A DNA stretch of 64,000 bases, taken from positions 32,495-96,494 of the forward strand of contig NW_005434628.1 of the NCBI RefSeq assembly GCF_000315625.1. Direction: 5' to 3'. The notes under the pieces were generated by a model. It was given only the letters and a program-made list of their open reading frames with translations. It had not been told where the DNA came from and did no database searches. Position 1 is the first letter of the stretch, and every line of letters begins with the position of its first letter. Of this stretch, positions 39,671-55,420 are shown one piece after another. A program made the position numbers and the translations under genes. Origin of the DNA: Guillardia theta CCMP2712 (lineage: Eukaryota > Protista > Cryptophyta).

Positions 39671-42600
39671 ATGGATCCGACACAGCCAAAGCCTCAACTC
39701 AAGGTCAAGGAGGTGAGCAAGCTGGACTGCGAGAGTTGCTCCATCTAGCGGCAAGAGGGTGATGACGGGCGCGGACAGGTCATCGGGGCGCTATGCAAGA
39801 AAATCTTTCAGGAGATAGAGAAGGTCAACCCACAACAAGCGCAGCTCTTCAAGAGAGAAGTCCTGACAGGGGGGAAGACTGACATACAACAGGTAGTGAC
39901 TGGTTGATGTTCTGATGGGGTTCATTGATTCCTCTGCCATGCCACAGTACTTGCAATTGGCGGACCAGTACGTTGAGCGATATGCAATGCACATGGCCCC
40001 CGACGTAGAATCAGTCAGGGTCAAATATGGCGTCTCGAGACAAGCTCGAGTTTCTCAATCGGGAACGGGTACATCCATCCGAATCGTGACATGATCCTTT
40101 GACAGAGCTTGTAGGAAATGCTTCCAACCCAAGTGCGCCCAGCAATCAGGTAAATGATACGATCTGACAGTTGCTGCTATTCGAGAGCATCTCACATGTT
40201 GTCAGGTCCCAATGTCCAACCAAGCATCGCATCATGGTTCAGCGACCTACGGCTCAACTCATGCGAGCCATCAAGGCAGCGCTGCTCTCCCTGGCAGGTT
40301 GTATCTTCAAGCTCGTCTCTGCATCATTACGTTGACTTGCTCTCAAGCTCGACGAGAAGCGACTCCATCCATCGCTTTCAGCAGCCCGTCCCCAGCCAGC
40401 AGGTGCCGACACCTTATGGCTCCAATAGCACGGGGCTACAACAGCAAAGTACCGCCCAGCAACGAAGCTCCGTACAGCCAGGGACCATGCAACCAGGGGC
40501 CATGCAGCCGGGAAACATGCATCGAAGCTCTGTACCGCAAGGGGGGGGGCAGCAGGGAAATGTGCAGCAAGGAGGGATGCAGAGAAGCTCTGTACCCCAG
40601 GGAGGGATACAGCAGGGGGTTGTACAACAAGGGGGTATACAGCAGGGGAGCTTGCAGCAGGGGGTTATACAGAGAAGCTCTGTACCCCAGGGAGGGATAC
40701 AGCAGGGGGTTGTACAACAAGGGGGTATACAGCAGGGGAGCTTGCAGCAGGGGGTTATACAGAGAAGCTCTGTACCCCAGGGTGGGGTGCAGCAGGGAAC
40801 TATGCGAGGGTCGTTGCCTCAGACTTCGTCAGGTTCACTTCCGATGCAAAATCCGAGCGGAGCGAATCAAGGAGCCAGTAAGCAGTCAGACTCGACGACG
40901 TCAACCTGATATTCTTGTTTGCCCACCAGGTGCTCCATCCTCCTACACCTCCGCCTCGAACATGCCAAGTGTAAATCGAGGAGCTGTGCCAGTCACTCAA
41001 ACTCCAGTGCCTGGCAGTGGCAGTGTGGCTCCTGGGGCTCTGCCTGCTGCACCTGGTGGGGTTGCTCGGACTATGCCAGTGAGCTACAACACGACCAGCC
41101 CGTCAACTTCGTTGAGCTCCTCGTATGACTCGACCGCCATCGGCTTGATGTCGACTGTCGGCATCCAAAAGCCGGTAGGCGGCAGCACGTGCACTCGTCA
41201 GGTCTGACAAGGTCAAACCAGGGAACGGCGACGGTGAAGAGCACAGACTGTAAAGCTTGCAAGGGAAAACACGTCAAGTGATGCATCGATAGGAGCGGAT
41301 GTGTAAGCTCCTCTAACGCACTGCAGGCACACGTGCTCGAAGGCGAAGCCGATCTCAGATTCCAACCGCAAGCCGGGGCAGGAGTATGGCACCGGCAGCT
41401 CTCCTGGCAGCGCGTCGTCTCCCGCCCCCATGCCGCTTCCCAGCAGCTCGACGAGCCATATGGGGCTGACAGGACAGATGGACGTGTTGGGCAAGCGGAC
41501 CAGAGATGGGGACTACGAGGATCCGATGCAAGTGAAGCGCGTGAAACCTGACGGGATGACCGCACAGCCTCACGACAGCAACACGATCTACAAGGACCAG
41601 GTAGCTCCCCTGAGACCCTTGACCCTCAGTCGCTGACCCTCGTCCTGCAGTTGCATGCGAAGATGCAGCAGGTCGAAGAGGAAAGGATGGTGCGAAGGGT
41701 CTGACCAGCTGCCAGATTTTCAAAGCGAGGAAGAAGCAGCAGGAAGACGATCTGTCCAGCAAGAAGACCAAGTCATCTCCTGCTCTGACGTCGGCATGTC
41801 CTGAAATGTTTCAAGGTGTGAGGTCTGTCAATCGTCCTTTCCCCATAAGGCTACCGATCATCAGTTCAAGAAAGGTGAACCCTGCGCTTGCCTGCCACCT
41901 CTCATGTACTGCAGCTGGGGTTGTGCTGTTGGAGTCCATCGAACAGCAAGCATACTACTGTATGCGATATGCCTGCGAGCAGCGAGTCAAACACGTGCGA
42001 GCTGAGCTGAGGAAGGGGGATACATGACAGGGTGTCAGGTCCTGAGCCACCTCATGTCCATCTCGAGGAATCGATTCGATCAGGTGGACTTGAGCTGGGC
42101 CTGTCGCTCTCGTCAACCGCCTTTTGATCGTTCTACAGCTGAGAAACAACAAGGCGAATCTCACAGGGATGGTGCGCGAGCAGGACGTCAAGGAACAAGC
42201 GAAGTATCGCGACATCGATGGACGTCGTTGCCGGCTGAGCGCTGACGTGATGGTGCTTCAGGCAGTTGCTGAAGCAACTTGAGATGCAAGAGGAGTCGAA
42301 GAAGCAGGAGCAGGTGAACTTGTTGCATGCAAGGCGCGCGGCTGACCACGAGCAGAGCAAGAAGGATCAGAACTTTCACAGCCTGGCCAACCAGACAGCT
42401 CTCCTGGCCGGTAGCTGGACGAGCATGCCGGCTCATTGTTGAGTGTGTTTGCCAGTCGGAAGGGCTGGAGGGTCAGCGGGAGGAGGCACGAGCGTGTCCA
42501 ACGCGGTGAGGAGGATCGAGCTGCGAGACATCCTCCACCTCCTAGAGCGCGAGGTCAGCTGATCCCCAGCTGCCCCCGAGCTCTCAGCTGACCAATCGCA

Positions 42601-49310: not shown

Positions 49311-50811
49311 TCACATGATCAAACACTTCTTCTCCCCATCAGATCCTTCTTGACCAGCCTGTCGTCATCGTCATCCGCAGGCAGTATGAATCAAACTTTA
49401 GAACCTCGCACTGGAGTATCAGCTTCCGAAAGATCTCCTCGATGTTGGTGTTGAACTTGGCACTGCTCTCAATGAATGGAACGCCCCACTCATCCGCCAG
49501 CCGCTGTCCCTCCTCCGTAGCCACCTCCCTTTCATGGACCAGATCGCTCTTGTTGCCCACCAGCACCTGACCTCATCCATCAGAAGCGGAGAGCAAAGAG
49601 CGCAGAAATTCACATGAGGGATGTTCTCCGTCCCCACAGCATTCAACAGCTTGTCGCGGATGGTGCTGACCATGTCGAAGGACCTCCTCGACACGATGGA
49701 GTACCTGAGGTTAGCCAGGTTCAGCCCCTCCAAACAGACGACAAGTGGAGGGTACATGAGGATGTAGCCGTGGATCCCCATCGCATATCTCGTGTGAAAT
49801 ATTTGATATCTGCGTGCCATAGTGTCACAACCTCTTCCCCCACAGCCGTCAGAGCTCGTCTCACTCGTCCTGCCCTGCCGTGTCCAAAATGTCTGTCTGG
49901 TACTCGATCCCCTGTATCTCGCGTGAGAAGAAACACCAGCTATCAACATCCCCGGACCTTGTGCCGGATCACTTTCTGAAACGTGTTTTCAATCGTCGGG
50001 CTGTACGGCTCTGCAAAGTGACCTTCGGTGAACTGGATAGTGACAGCACTCTTCCCTGCGGCACTCGTGTCAACCTTGCAACCACCGCACCCCATGGATC
50101 TCACCCACTCCCATGAACCCCAGGACTGCAATCTTCCGCTGCAACTTCTGCTTTGTGCTCGAAGAAGCTCCCGACCCGCTCCCCAGGGCATCGGAGAGCT
50201 TCCCACTGCAGCTCCGGTTGGCATCAATGAATGCTCTGAACTCTGGGCTCCCAGCCGCGTTAGGGTCTGCAACCTGCGAAGAGCACCGTGAGCTGGGTGG
50301 AGACAACGAAGAATGGCAGGAGGACTAAACATGACGGGAGGAGCGGTCGAGAGCTCACCAAGTCCTTCAAGTACTGCTGCAAAAAGTTCTTCCTCTCCTC
50401 GACAAACTCGGGCTTCATGTTGCCTCCCATCTTCTTTTGCGGCAGTCGACCGGGGAACGAGGGATTCCTGGACGTCATTGTCGTTCAGCGGAGCACAGAA
50501 TCTCCACCCCTCTCATACCTCTCCTTGATCTTCGCGTCCAGCTCGTGAAACTGTCGATACCTGCGAGCCAGAACGGGTGCAACAAACTCGGTCAGTCTGT
50601 ATGCGCCAGCAGCATGCATCAGAGCACCTCCTCCACACCACCCATGGTCCGATCTCACTGCGTAGCTCCACCTTGTACACAGTGAACTTCTTCCCTCCCT
50701 CCTCCCGCACTTCCGTGCCAGTGATCGTGGCGCTCTGAACTGGGAGACCGAGGGTCAGCGCAGGGAGAAAGTTGGTCATTTCGGCCTCTCACCCCTCGTC
50801 GAGCGCTCCAT
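49311..50811 (-). CDS. RHEB: Rheb GTPase with N-terminal PX domain and C-terminal CaaX (CLIM), multi-exon
   Basis: PX: FTVYKV...VVWRR|YRQFHEL...LPQKK...[13 protein letters not shown]. Rheb: [11 protein letters not shown]|[50 protein letters not shown], and KKCLIM*. Confidence 0.9.
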
Positions 50812-52067
50812 TGGAACAAAGAATACAAGTACTGAAGAATAAGGTGTGAGGCAATCATGCACAGGGCAGCAGCAGTGCGAACAACTCTTGCGATGGGAAC
50901 TAGGACTCCTGGCCTCCGCGCTCACCTTTCCCCTGCAGTCCCTCTTCCTCCTCAACATCGAATGAGATCGACAGCTCAAGCCATCATGCTTGCATCATCT
51001 TTCTCCTGTCTTCATGTTCTATTCTGACCTCTCCCCACATCTCCCTCCCTCCCTCCCTCCCTCCCTCCCTCCCTCCCTCCCTCCTCCAGGTTCATCCGTC
51101 CACTCAGCCATACCTACGCCCTCTACGAGGCAGTACCCCCTTTCCTTCCTCCCACCACCCCCTACTTTTCCCATCCACAGAATTCAAGTACCCACCCATT
51201 CTCATTGACAGTACCCCACCATCAAATATCCCACAACAGCAACTCAAATGGACCGGTATCTCTGATACCTCCTTGAAATCATCCTGAGGTGAGCTCACTC
51301 TGTGGAGGTGTCCGTTGAAGACCACCCCACCCCCCAGTCTCCCAGTCAACCACGAATGAGGTCTGGACAGCTTCAGATGGAAGCAGAGTGTCTTGGGGTC
51401 ATGTGGAAAAGGGGGGTACTGAAACGTATAAGATGGGGTGGTATTGATGAGTCGGGGGTGCCTGCGGCTGCGACTCGTGGGGTGGACTGTGGGCTGGGAT
51501 GTAGGAAAATGCTGATTAGAGGGGGGTAGTTTGTAGGGAAATGGAGGGGTGGAAAAGGTGTATTTAGGGGGTAGGGGTATTGGCGATGAAGCATGCAGAG
51601 GGGGGAAAGATTGCAAATATGGTTGAAAGCGACGAGGGCTAGGAGGAGGAGGAGGAGGAGGAGGAGGAGGAGGAGGATATGAATGGAGAAGGGCGGGGGA
51701 AGAGGGAGGGAGGATCAGGAAACGATCATGGATTCAGTGATTCCATCTTGGACGAAGAGTTGAATATTTTCATCGAAATGAGTCTGATCAGAGGTCTTTC
51801 CTGGGAGTAAGAGAGTAATAAGACAATGGATGAGAGACAACAGGGAATTTTGAGAAGATGAATAGGAAGACAAGACAGAGTTGAAGTCAGAGACAAGAAG
51901 AAGGCTTGATTGCCTCGATGTGTGCTCTTCTTCCGATGATATCAAACTAACGCTGTTGTGCAGGTCCTGACATTCTGGAGCGATTAGGTTCTCGTGTCCC
52001 TGCCATGAATGCCTGAACGTGCCATGGTCATGCGATCGCAAAGAAGACATCCCATGGCTGCAGATGG

Positions 52068-54284
52068 ATGCTACTGAAATCCGGGTCTACCTTCTTGTAC
52101 TGGCTAGTTTTGAACTTTGTATCAAAACTTGTGAGCTCGAGCGAGGCCGTTGAAGCTTTCTCGCTCCTCGAAGAATCTACTCTCACTTTCCATGCGGGCT
52201 ACTTCTCCACAGCTACCAACCCTACTCTGCAACTGGTGGGCCCTTGCTGACCCCTGCGATCTAGTTGAGTGACAGAACTTGTCCAGGAATGCTCACAGAC
52301 TGAGTGCAACGGCTGCGTGCTAAAATGTCTGACCTGTGAACGTGATCTTTCAGAAAAGCTTCGATCGTCTCACTCGGTCATCGCAGAAGTCGTCGGGTGT
52401 CAATCAAGCTGCGGGAACTGGACTTGTTTCACAGACTATCCAAAGCCTCACTGCGACCTGGATAGTGTACACATCTATTGTGAGACCATGGGCCACGCTA
52501 AGAAGATGGGGCAAATGCAAATGATCAAGAGAGGGAGTTGCTCGGCTCGATACTCCCTTTTGAGCCATAAAAACACGAAACAAGCTGCTGATGTCTATCG
52601 GTATACACTGACAGCAGACGATAACGAGAGCGGAAATATTCTCAAGAAAGGTATAGCCACTAAACCCCACAGGACAAAGGCAATCGAAGAGAGTCCTCCT
52701 TTCCGCTCCTCTCTCTCAACTTTCTCAGAGGTGGCGAAGAAGGAGAATGAAAGCTTCGCCGCTCCAGCATATGCGAGCTCGAAGTACGAATACCCAAGCA
52801 AATCGATCGAAATTGAAAGATATCCTTTCGAAGACGGAGAGACAAAAGTGCGGATAGAGCAGCAAGATGAGGTAAACAATGCGCCTGCTGGCGGCGCTGA
52901 TGCGGGAACATGCAAAGCCTCGGACAACTCGTACTACTCCTACTGGCCAGGCTGTCTTGGAACGATCTTGGGCTTCTGGATGTTATACTACAAGGGTCGA
53001 TCGCTTCCGATTCGGGTCGGGCTGAAAAGACTTGGCCGTTCTCCCTACGCGCTTGACTCTGAGAACTTCGACGAGGGTTACGGAAGCGGGGGAGAAGGCA
53101 ACCATGAGATCGAGCGAGACGGGGAAAACTTCGGGGAAGATGATGACTTGTTGTACGTGGAAGCGCCTCCGATGAAACCTAGATGGAAGACTTACACAGT
53201 GGACATGAGCCTGTTGTCTTCTAACGTCACTTCTCTCTTTGTTCTGTCGCACCTGTCTCAGCGGAACCATGCCCTGCGAAGACAGGACGGCGGTGGCTCC
53301 AGGCAGCCTTCGGCTATGAAGGGCAAGATTACAATGGACACACACCGTCGAGTAGGAATCAGAAATCTTGGCTCGACTTGCTTCATGAACGCTTGCCTGC
53401 AGCTCATGGCGAACATCGAAGGGTTCGAGAGCGTCATCTTTGATAGCCTGGATGGCAACGACACGAGCGAGAAGTCAGAGATCGCCTGGCACATTGCGTC
53501 AGTCATCTCGGCTATCCGTAACAAGTCCGTTGATTCCAGAGTATCAGCTGGGCTTGAGCTCGTCAAACGGGCAGGCAGAATTTGCATTGTACCCTCGAGA
53601 ATCGTTTCCCTCCTGGACAAGCTGATGACGACTGGACATGTTGCAGGACAGCAGGAGTGCGCAGCGGAGTTCCTCCTGTACATGATCAACCACGTCGCCC
53701 AGTTCAAGCCCGTGTCGCAGTCGCTGCAGAAGACGATGGGGATAAACTTCAAGATCCACATCTCCTCTGAGTCGATGGGGATGAGCAACGTCAAGCAGGA
53801 GGTGGACTGGATGATCCACTCTCCCATCAGCGGGGACTCTCTGGAGGATTGCCTGACGGACTACACGCGCACTGAGTCAGGCCTGCAAGTCGGAGACAAG
53901 CACGATGGAACGCAAAGGACACTAGTGGAGTCCTGCGGGGAGTACCTTCTGATCTGCCTCAAGAGGTTCAGCTTCCAGCAGTCGTCCAAGTCCTTCACCA
54001 AGGAGCGCAGGTCGGTTGCGGTCCCGCACACTTTCAACTTGAGCACCGTGCTCGAGGACGGACGATCGGAGGCGTACGAGCTCATCGGCGCCATCGTGCA
54101 CATCGGAAGGGGGCTGGAGTCGGGGCACTACGTGGCCTACAGTCGGGTGGATGGAGCTTGGTTAGAGATGAACGATGAGGTTGTCAAGGTCGTGCAGCAA
54201 TCCGAGCTGGACAAGACGCTGGAGGAGCAGGCGTACATACTCTTGTACCGACATGCCGTCGCGCAAGAAGACTCTAACGAGTGA
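52068..54284 (+). CDS. Signal peptide + SARAF/TMEM66-like domain + TM + USP (peptidase C19) deubiquitinase
   Basis: Exon 1 (52068-52235) is joined via intron 52236-52287 to the 671-codon ORF. USP motifs are GIRNLGSTCFMNACLQ, QQECAAEFL, LLICLKRF and YELIGAIVHIGRGLESGHYVAY...WLEMNDE...AYILLY. Confidence 0.85.
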
Positions 54285-54338
54285 GCCGCTAGAGTCTCTC
54301 GCTGTTTCTCGTGATTGATAAGTTGGGCCCGCTGGGTT

Positions 54339-55420
54339 TTAACGTACATGAATGAAGATCATTGCTTGGTGTATGCGAACTCCTCGTGGCTGTCGGGAAA
54401 GCTGGCGAAGAGGCGGAGGAGGACTACCATCAGCCAGACCTTGATAGCCATCAGTCTCATTCCTCGCCAGCTCGCACATTCTCACCAGAACCGCGCAGAC
54501 TGCTATGATGATGAAGTAGATGTTGTCCACCGACAGGACTTCTCGTGCCCCCAGCAGCAACGCTACGATGCCCAACGTGTGAACCACGAAGCCTAAGAGG
54601 CTAGTCAGAGCCACCACTACCGCCGCCTCCTCCCACTGCTCCTGTTCGTCGTGCTACGGAGTCCTCTTCCTCCTCCTCCTAAACATCCCCCTCCCTCCTC
54701 ACCGCTCGTCCCATGCCAGCGGTGGACCTTCTGCCCGCTCGTCGACACTGACTGATACTGGACCACAGCAGGTCAGCCCATCGCACTTGACAGCATCGCC
54801 GACCTTGAGCCACCCTATGGACATCTGCATGACGATTCCCGCCACAGTCAAGAGGCCAAACATTCCGTGCAGCGACAAGGCGAGGGGCTACGGGTATGTC
54901 AGGCGGCCAACACCCTCTGCCGAGACGGCGACGTACCGAGTGATGCACCAGCAGCTTGTTAGTGACTGTGAAGAGCTTTAGAAGCTCCCAACTCCTCCTC
55001 CTTCCCACTTCCCCTCTCCCCACTTCCTCTACCTCCTCTCCCCCCCCCCCCTCCTCCTCCTCCTCCCTCGGCTCACTGATCACGACGAGCCCTACGAGCG
55101 CTGAAATCCCTCCTGCTATCTGCAGCTCCAGCTCATGATTTGTTTTCTTGCCCAAGAAGCATGAAGCTGACCAACCCACCTGCCATATCCTGTGCCCGTC
55201 CCTCACATCCTGGAGGTTTCGCTCGGACTCGCTCGTTGTCAACGATTCCAGTCTGTACCTGACCAGCCGTTTCAGCGCTCATTCACAACCATGGCACAGG
55301 CACATTGTCATCCCGTAAGGCAGGAGGGCCACCATCGCCGCTGCCATGGCGGTGGCATGGATTCCCAGCAGCAAAGATTGCTTAAAGACAACTGGTGTGT
55401 TTCTGTCAGTACCAGTACGA
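54339..55420 (-). CDS. Hypothetical multi-pass membrane protein, multi-exon (ends uncertain)
   Basis: Hydrophobic segments LLLGIHATAMAAMVALL, IAGGISALVGLVVIS and LLGFVVHTLGIVALLLG...IYFIIIAVCAVLV in short exons. Confidence 0.4.

Follow-up and report, generated by a model that had tools for sequence, protein, structure and literature searches.

Can a ubiquitin-specific protease (USP) be built like a membrane receptor, with a folded domain on the luminal side of a membrane and its catalytic domain in the cytosol? This question is raised by a gene of the cryptophyte Guillardia theta CCMP2712, located at 52068-54284 on the plus strand of the 64,000-nucleotide (nt) stretch of genomic DNA analysed here (contig NW_005434628.1, positions 32,495 to 96,494, hereafter called the window). 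In the original prediction, the gene was read as a SARAF-like luminal domain fused through a transmembrane (TM) helix to an intact USP. With a probability of about 0.6, we interpret the product as a type I membrane USP of receptor-like layout whose ectodomain has a divergent SARAF fold, and in which the helix and the ectodomain would localise, and may oligomerise, the cytosolic catalytic domain. The gene represents a new USP domain architecture in a narrow lineage. Positions given below without further designation are those of the window, and all features of the gene are on its plus strand.

Gene structure and expression

The gene is intact in the window and runs from the ATG at 52068 to the TGA at 54282-54284, with 721 codons (721 amino acids, aa) after splicing. 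Exon 1 (52068-52235, 56 codons) opens with a hydrophobic N-terminus; it encodes the predicted signal peptide together with the initial strands of the SARAF-like domain (..LLEESTLTFHAGYFSTATNPTLQL). It ends in ..PTLQL and is directly followed by a GT at 52236. The intron (52236-52286) is 51 nt long, of the GT..AG type and in frame, with two TGA codons inside, while exon 2 (52287-54284) is an uninterrupted open reading frame (ORF) of 665 codons and a stop. Contigs from runs X1, X2 and X9, which belong to three studies, contain exactly this joint (52234->52286, 'skips 51, GT..AG'). They span about 51964-54437, and the 51-nt intron is the sole joint inside the ORF. Because these contigs carry spliced joints, they derive from RNA. 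A GT-AG intron connecting the hydrophobic N-terminus to a single ORF had been predicted, and to this extent the prediction was correct; its assumed length of 52 nt (52236-52287) was not, as the end was placed one base too far, which would break the frame.

A second, optional intron of 63 nt had been proposed at 53199-53261. The stretch does have GT..AG ends, yet it is skipped in no transcript contig (this applies to the contig level, and rare isoforms are possible). Since it is unspliced in the contigs and its 21 codons (VDMSLLSSNVTSLFVLSHLSQ) are identical in protein P0001 of Hanusia phi, it can be regarded as retained coding sequence. The possibility of two separate genes was rejected in view of the single transcript, the single ORF and P0001, which runs from the tail of the N-terminal domain to the end of the USP. 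The SARAF-like/USP locus is a real, expressed, single gene unit.

P0001 (593 aa) starts at MGQMQMIKRGSCSARYSL, that is, in the last strands of the N-terminal domain (hereafter N-domain), and continues as a single ORF through the linker, the helix and the USP. The N-domain tail is fully identical in the two proteins (100%); for the remaining regions, identity amounts to 62% (luminal linker), 57% (helix), 42% (acidic linker), 77% (pre-USP segment) and 88% (USP). The domains are thus conserved while the linkers drift yet stay open, and it can therefore be inferred that they form one protein.

The USP domain

Judged from its sequence, the C-terminal half is a clear, intact USP with a complete predicted triad. 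The catalytic domain (peptidase C19; aa 412-710, 53352-54248) matched the Pfam family PF00443 over profile positions 1-254 of 254 (E 1.8e-35, 123.2 bits against a gathering cut-off of 23.9). Among solved USP structures, 83 chains matched, with USP46 as the best (E 5e-13), followed by USP12 and USP36. When aligned to USP46, the predicted catalytic residues are Cys421 in the Cys box NLGSTCFMN (53379-53381), His670 in the His box (GRGLESGHYVAY, GHYVAY; 54126-54128) and, as the third member of the triad, Asn685-Asp686 in WLEMNDEVV (54171-54176). The full Cys/His/Asn-Asp triad that had been read from the sequence is therefore borne out by both the full-length profile match and the alignment of the boxes.

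At the same time, the candidate USP is divergent by sequence comparison. No CxxC zinc-ribbon motifs were seen in its fingers region, and a word-index search of 5.8 billion proteins yielded no relatives of the USP half at E <= 1e-10 other than the Hanusia phi orthologue; this threshold is strict, and more distant USPs fall outside the listing.

Predicted membrane topology

Hydrophobicity was evaluated with the Wimley-White octanol scale in 19-residue windows, with Kyte-Doolittle as the second scale. Only two strongly hydrophobic windows were found, aa 1-19 (-7.6 kcal/mol) and aa 272-290 (-10.0 kcal/mol). The former is part of the predicted signal peptide (aa 1-27, MLLKSGSTFLYWLVLNFVSKLVSSSEA; 52068-52148), for which cleavage after SEA is presumed. 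The latter, the strongest hydrophobic window of the protein, belongs to a candidate TM helix with a GxxGxxxG pattern (aa 272-291, YYSYWPGCLGTILGFWMLYY; 52932-52991), whose counterpart in Hanusia phi scores -8.4 kcal/mol on the Wimley-White octanol scale. The hydrophobic stretch YWPGCLGTILGFWMLYY with its basic C-flank KGRSLPIRVGLKRLGR had been singled out as TM already in the original prediction, and on the Wimley-White scale it is indeed the one strong internal hydrophobic segment. Five basic residues occur within the 16 aa of this juxtamembrane flank (52992-53039; KGRSLPRRFRFK in P0001), and the stretch N-terminal to the helix is neutral. On the basis of the positive-inside rule, the flank is placed on the cytosolic side. 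The predicted luminal or extracellular linker (aa 148-271; 52560-52931) contains two NES sequons, N169 and N210, both of which are kept in Hanusia phi. The leader, helix, basic flank and sequons all fit a type I single-pass topology with the USP facing the cytosol, which we consider probable.

The cytosolic linker (53040-53351) begins with an acidic, poorly conserved stretch that includes EDDDLL, an acidic dileucine-like motif (EDNDML in Hanusia phi), and continues with the highly conserved KPRWKTYTVDMSLLSSNVTSLFVLSHLSQRN. The latter segment (53154-53270), located shortly 5' of the USP and closely preceded by EDDDLL, hardly differs between Guillardia and Hanusia, while the adjoining linker drifts; it is mildly hydrophobic and may form an amphipathic or regulatory helix packing against the USP. 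A second TM at aa 358-381 was considered and rejected, as this stretch reaches only -2.6 kcal/mol, is polar and lies within the near-invariant segment next to the USP. No C-terminal ER-retrieval motif (ER, endoplasmic reticulum) was found in the 721-aa protein. The candidate might reside in the ER and have a Ca2+-store or ER-associated degradation (ERAD) role.

Probable relationship of the N-domain to SARAF

The divergent, SARAF-like Cys-rich domain comprises aa 31-147 of the spliced protein (52158-52559, split by the intron). Of its 11 Cys, five (C58, C73, C103, C121 and C141) coincide with canonical SARAF Cys in the alignment, and C63/C66 are within one or two residues of the sixth, with the disulfide pairing being a predicted one. 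The motifs by which SARAF had been recognised in the original prediction (LLEESTLTFHAGYFST, PTLQL|EC, NWTCFTD, VHIYCE and IKRGSCSARYSL) are all present. As detailed below, the similarity is best seen indirectly, through a paralogue of the domain and the canonical SARAF of the same species.

The paralogue, the only one in the genome, is located at G000:C6:15298-15663 (L010) and was recovered with E 1e-4 in the forward and E 9e-3 in the reverse search. The N-domains of the candidate and the paralogue are 33% identical and align with a Smith-Waterman score of 168, compared with 28 +/- 5 for shuffles. The paralogue region extends over about 1374-2630 of L010 (G000:C6:13816-17163) on the + strand. 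It starts with a hydrophobic leader that ends right before SLTFHAGYFS, and hydrophobic stretches occur downstream. Exon 1 ends with ..SLTFHAGYFSVSSAPVLQL at L010:1430 and is followed by a 52-nt GT..AG intron (1431-1482), after which exon 2 starts with DC... The intron occupies the same codon position as that of the candidate, after ..P.LQL.

The paralogue continues differently. Approximately 0.5 kb beyond its SARAF-like exon, the same strand encodes two canonical EF-hand loops, DTDGSGALDRTE and DLDGNGEIDE; as introns interrupt them, each alone stays below the Pfam threshold. When GT..AG introns were enumerated, open paths were obtained that lead from the SARAF-like exon into this classical EF-hand pair via introns L010:2219-2293 and 2339-2390. 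By visual inspection, GEIDE is probably followed by another intron, of the GC..AG type. According to this candidate gene model, derived from genomic sequence, the paralogue would combine a SARAF-like ectodomain with EF-hands.

Guillardia theta also possesses a canonical SARAF gene (L008, G000:C60:39962-43030), on the minus strand at contig coordinates of about 40370-41700. It consists of many tiny exons of 23-28 codons each and encodes a Pro/Gly-rich cytosolic tail; its summed exons pass the Pfam cut-off. Because the genome has this separate canonical gene on C60, the candidate is not the SARAF orthologue. For comparison, the luminal exons of the C60 locus were joined (with approximate junctions) into a sequence that had played no part in the original prediction. 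An alignment with all SARAF exon pieces was set aside, two of the pieces being misplaced.

Significance of Smith-Waterman scores against this luminal domain was estimated from 20000 composition-preserving shuffles. The paralogue scored 83 compared with 27.4 +/- 5.0 (0/20000 shuffles, Gumbel p 3.6e-7), with 6/6 canonical SARAF Cys aligned, and the candidate 58 compared with 27.0 +/- 4.7 (2/20000 shuffles, p 1e-4). A hidden Markov model (HMM) built from the candidate and the paralogue ranked the real SARAF 1/5001, with 19.0 bits against 11.8 for the best of 5000 shuffles. When the candidate+paralogue profile was aligned to Guillardia theta SARAF by hhalign, the probability was 78.6% and P 1.7e-5 over 92 collinear columns. 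Finally, the three nearest ESM-Atlas clusters of the paralogue were all PF06682, the SARAF family (score 0.86, 193/256 shared features). These comparisons make it likely that the N-domain belongs to the SARAF-fold superfamily as a divergent member. Judged by the threshold of the Pfam SARAF family, however, it falls outside that family.

A number of results weigh against our interpretation and have to be set beside this evidence. As for the database searches, the queries to Pfam, PDB, phmmer, AlphaFold and ESM Atlas were the unjoined exon products, and the spliced exon 1+2 sequence entered script-run comparisons only. The Pfam SARAF family (PF06682, gathering cut-off 30.8 bits) was not matched at E <= 10 by the exon-1 or the exon-2 product, and no SARAF match was obtained for the paralogue product. 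A six-frame whole-genome scan with the SARAF HMM had no match at the candidate or the paralogue, though the canonical gene was found; the scan covered the 87.1-Mb, 669-contig assembly, where the candidate is on contig C46 (the window being its positions 32495-96494). Using the N-domain part of exon 2, phmmer retrieved only one spurious FG-GAP-like repeat protein from 1.84 billion representatives. In the PDB, which includes the human SARAF/TMEM66 luminal domain (6O2U), no sequence matched the candidate, the paralogue or the two-sequence profile at E <= 10. ESM Atlas gave no usable match to the candidate, whole or trimmed, and the phmmer score of the candidate against Guillardia theta SARAF, 10.2 bits, was equal to that of the best shuffles. 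AlphaFold2 models were poor, with a predicted local distance difference test (pLDDT) of 54 for the candidate exon-2 domain alone and 48 for the paralogue with a 4-row alignment, and a Foldseek search of the PDB with the latter low-confidence model (pLDDT 48) returned nothing significant. As for the membrane anchor, the candidate TM is weak on the Kyte-Doolittle scale (<0.85), owing to its many Trp, Tyr and Gly residues. As for the beginning of the protein, upstream ATGs could lower initiation at 52068, and P0001 begins at an internal Met, so that the N-domain is unconfirmed in Hanusia phi.

The SARAF part of the original prediction was thus supported only indirectly, through the paralogue, the shuffle statistics, hhalign and the PF06682 clusters, but not by Pfam, on either exon product or in the six-frame scan at the locus, nor by phmmer or the PDB searches. 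The blank searches might indicate that the Cys-rich domain of this membrane-anchored USP is a lineage-specific module, whose resemblance to SARAF arose by chance or by convergence of short motifs around disulfide Cys. Indeed, no profile or sequence search ties the candidate itself to SARAF, its phmmer score does not exceed those of the best shuffles, the structure models were poor, and the family had been chosen by eye, which amounts to a hidden multiple comparison. However, the shuffle p values (paralogue 3.6e-7, candidate 1e-4) were obtained against the Guillardia theta SARAF, a sequence to which this choice owed nothing. Moreover, the alignment is collinear across the entire domain with the canonical Cys aligned, an independent language-model search of the paralogue gave PF06682 clusters only, and the domain is positioned as in SARAF, right after a predicted signal peptide and ahead of a single candidate TM. 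We therefore regard a lineage-specific module as unlikely, albeit an explanation to be taken seriously.

The 5' leader and the start codon

The reading of the N-domain as a secreted ectodomain depends on initiation at 52068. An in-frame stop is present upstream of this ATG. The contig-covered 5' leader (51964-52067) contains five other ATGs, at 52005, 52024, 52030, 52054 and 52064. The ATG at 52005 opens a 3-codon in-frame upstream ORF (ATGAATGCCTGA), and those at 52024, 52030 and 52054, all out of frame, share one 17-codon upstream ORF ending at 52077, just past the main ATG. The ATG at 52064, 4 nt ahead of the main one, starts a 29-codon out-of-frame ORF; together, the leader ORFs fall within 52005-52153. 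They may reflect translational control, or else transcription may start further downstream.

Owing to these five ATGs between the contig start and 52068, translation could alternatively begin within the ORF, at Met124, Met130 or a later Met, resulting in a soluble or N-terminally anchored USP with no secreted ectodomain, the upstream ORF being a mere leader. The Hanusia phi protein model begins exactly at such a position, MGQMQM. Nevertheless, P0001 is transcriptome-derived, with no encoding contig on record, and its first residue may merely be where a truncated or unspliced contig begins to be open, and the true transcription start of the Guillardia gene may be 3' of the upstream ATGs. More importantly, the 123 upstream codons stay open once the verified intron is removed, and they are homologous to the coding exons of the paralogue, with the same intron phase, a conservation that would be unexpected for a leader. 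An internal start is thus very unlikely.

Phylogenetic distribution

In the word-index search of the 5.8 billion proteins, P0001 of Hanusia phi was the only relative of the N-region, and the paralogue had no relatives. Metagenome scans for further relatives were blank. The architecture is seen so far only in Guillardia and its sister genus Hanusia. The original prediction knew of no SARAF-USP fusion, and likewise no description of one was found in the literature searched, InterPro architectures being outside that search.

A cryptophyte USP with a predicted signal peptide might also be sought in plastid protein import. According to a phylogeny from 2025, ptDUP, the usual deubiquitinase of periplastidal import, is absent in Cryptophyta and an alternative enzyme was suggested (PMC12412216). 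The candidate could be this deubiquitinase of the symbiont-specific ERAD-like machinery (SELMA), with its USP in the periplastidal compartment and its ectodomain in the chloroplast-ER lumen, and its divergence from other USPs and restriction to cryptophytes would agree with such a role. On the other hand, the signal peptide is followed by an acidic, presumably folded, Cys-rich domain and not by a transit-peptide-like stretch, and the C-terminal domain of a type I protein inserted co-translationally in the ordinary way ends up in the host cytosol. In addition, the gene was found in Guillardia and Hanusia only, not cryptophyte-wide. We consider a role in periplastidal import highly improbable.

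Neighbouring genes

A convergent minus-strand gene at 54300-54700 overlaps the USP gene at its 3' end, and the transcript contigs pass directly from one into the other. The same contigs contain a 46-nt joint (54438-54483) with CT..AC ends, which is an intron of the convergent gene. They depart from the window sequence at 54593, where probably another of its introns is located. ORF pieces of the convergent gene resemble a small multi-pass membrane protein. Upstream of the USP gene, at 49943-50332 on the minus strand, an ORF piece resembles an exon of a small Ras/Rheb-type GTPase.

A proposed model of a receptor-like USP

Our preferred interpretation, a receptor-like type I membrane USP, can be put as follows. 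A cleavable signal peptide would send the disulfide-rich SARAF-fold N-domain and the linker of ~125 aa into the lumen of the secretory pathway, and the single Gly-rich helix (aa 272-291) would cross the membrane. The basic juxtamembrane stretch, the acidic linker and the predicted active USP would then be at the cytosolic face. The ectodomain and the helix would hold the USP at an endomembrane, and the two may in addition couple the oligomeric state of the USP to luminal conditions, in a way proposed for the disulfide-stabilised, domain-swapping luminal domain of SARAF. Anchored in this manner, the USP would trim ubiquitin off membrane-proximal substrates. With respect to the candidate itself, we infer signal-peptide cleavage, topology, fold, compartment, any sensing or dimerising role and the substrates.

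A more far-reaching version of the model can be imagined, in which the SARAF fold is a portable luminal sensor that Guillardia wires via one helix to either a deubiquitinase (the candidate) or an EF-hand pair (the paralogue). Luminal redox- or Ca2+-dependent oligomerisation would then switch cytosolic ubiquitin removal, making the candidate a receptor-type deubiquitinase. This version is speculative and we find it rather doubtful.

If the preferred interpretation is true, the USP class would have its first receptor-like layout here, with the enzyme placed behind a folded luminal domain. Natural fusions of a SARAF-like domain to an enzyme (with ubiquitin-7-amino-4-methylcoumarin cleavage as a readout) and to EF-hands would also provide handles on what the SARAF fold does. 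The significance is limited by the occurrence of the family in one cryptophyte lineage and by the weak sequence statistics of the SARAF link.

Comparison with known systems

The SARAF fold is a ten-stranded beta-sandwich with three conserved disulfides that forms a domain-swapped dimer; the crystal structure of the luminal domain revealed no Ca2+ site, and redox sensing was proposed (PMC8391525). The candidate resembles SARAF/TMEM66 (PF06682) in its predicted overall layout, in which a signal peptide is followed at once by a Cys-rich domain of ~110 aa and then by a single TM. It also shares with SARAF the collinear motifs L-T-F, P-x-x-Q-L-x-C, W-x-C, [VI]-x-C-E and [RK]-G-S-C-x-x-x-Y-S-L, and its six-Cys pattern matches the three disulfides of the SARAF fold (PMC8391525), five positions being exact and the sixth 1-2 residues off. 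Unlike SARAF, the candidate fails the Pfam model, and in comparison with Guillardia theta SARAF it has an insertion of ~13 residues between canonical Cys 3 and 4 as well as five extra Cys. In place of the Pro/Gly/Tyr-rich cytosolic tail by which SARAF acts, it has an acidic linker and a USP. The paralogue has the N-domain and the intron position in common with the candidate, but it carries an EF-hand pair downstream rather than a USP, is without the insertion and stands nearer to canonical SARAF.

As for the catalytic half, the Cys, QQ-E and His boxes align with those of USP46, USP12 and USP36, whereas the catalytic domain as a whole is only weakly similar to them (best E 5e-13). Membrane-anchored USPs include human USP19, with a C-terminal tail anchor in the ER, and USP30, with an N-terminal anchor in mitochondria and peroxisomes, as well as yeast Ubp1 and Ubp16. 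To our knowledge, these four have a bare anchor and no folded luminal domain, and we know of no well-studied membrane USP that is other than a simple anchored enzyme. For USP19, anchoring at the ER is also stated in PMC4726498. The candidate is similar to USP19, USP30, Ubp1 and Ubp16 in that a USP catalytic domain is tethered by one helix and, by prediction, faces the cytosol. It differs from them in that its anchor follows a signal peptide and ~245 predicted luminal residues, including a presumably folded domain, which makes its layout receptor-like.

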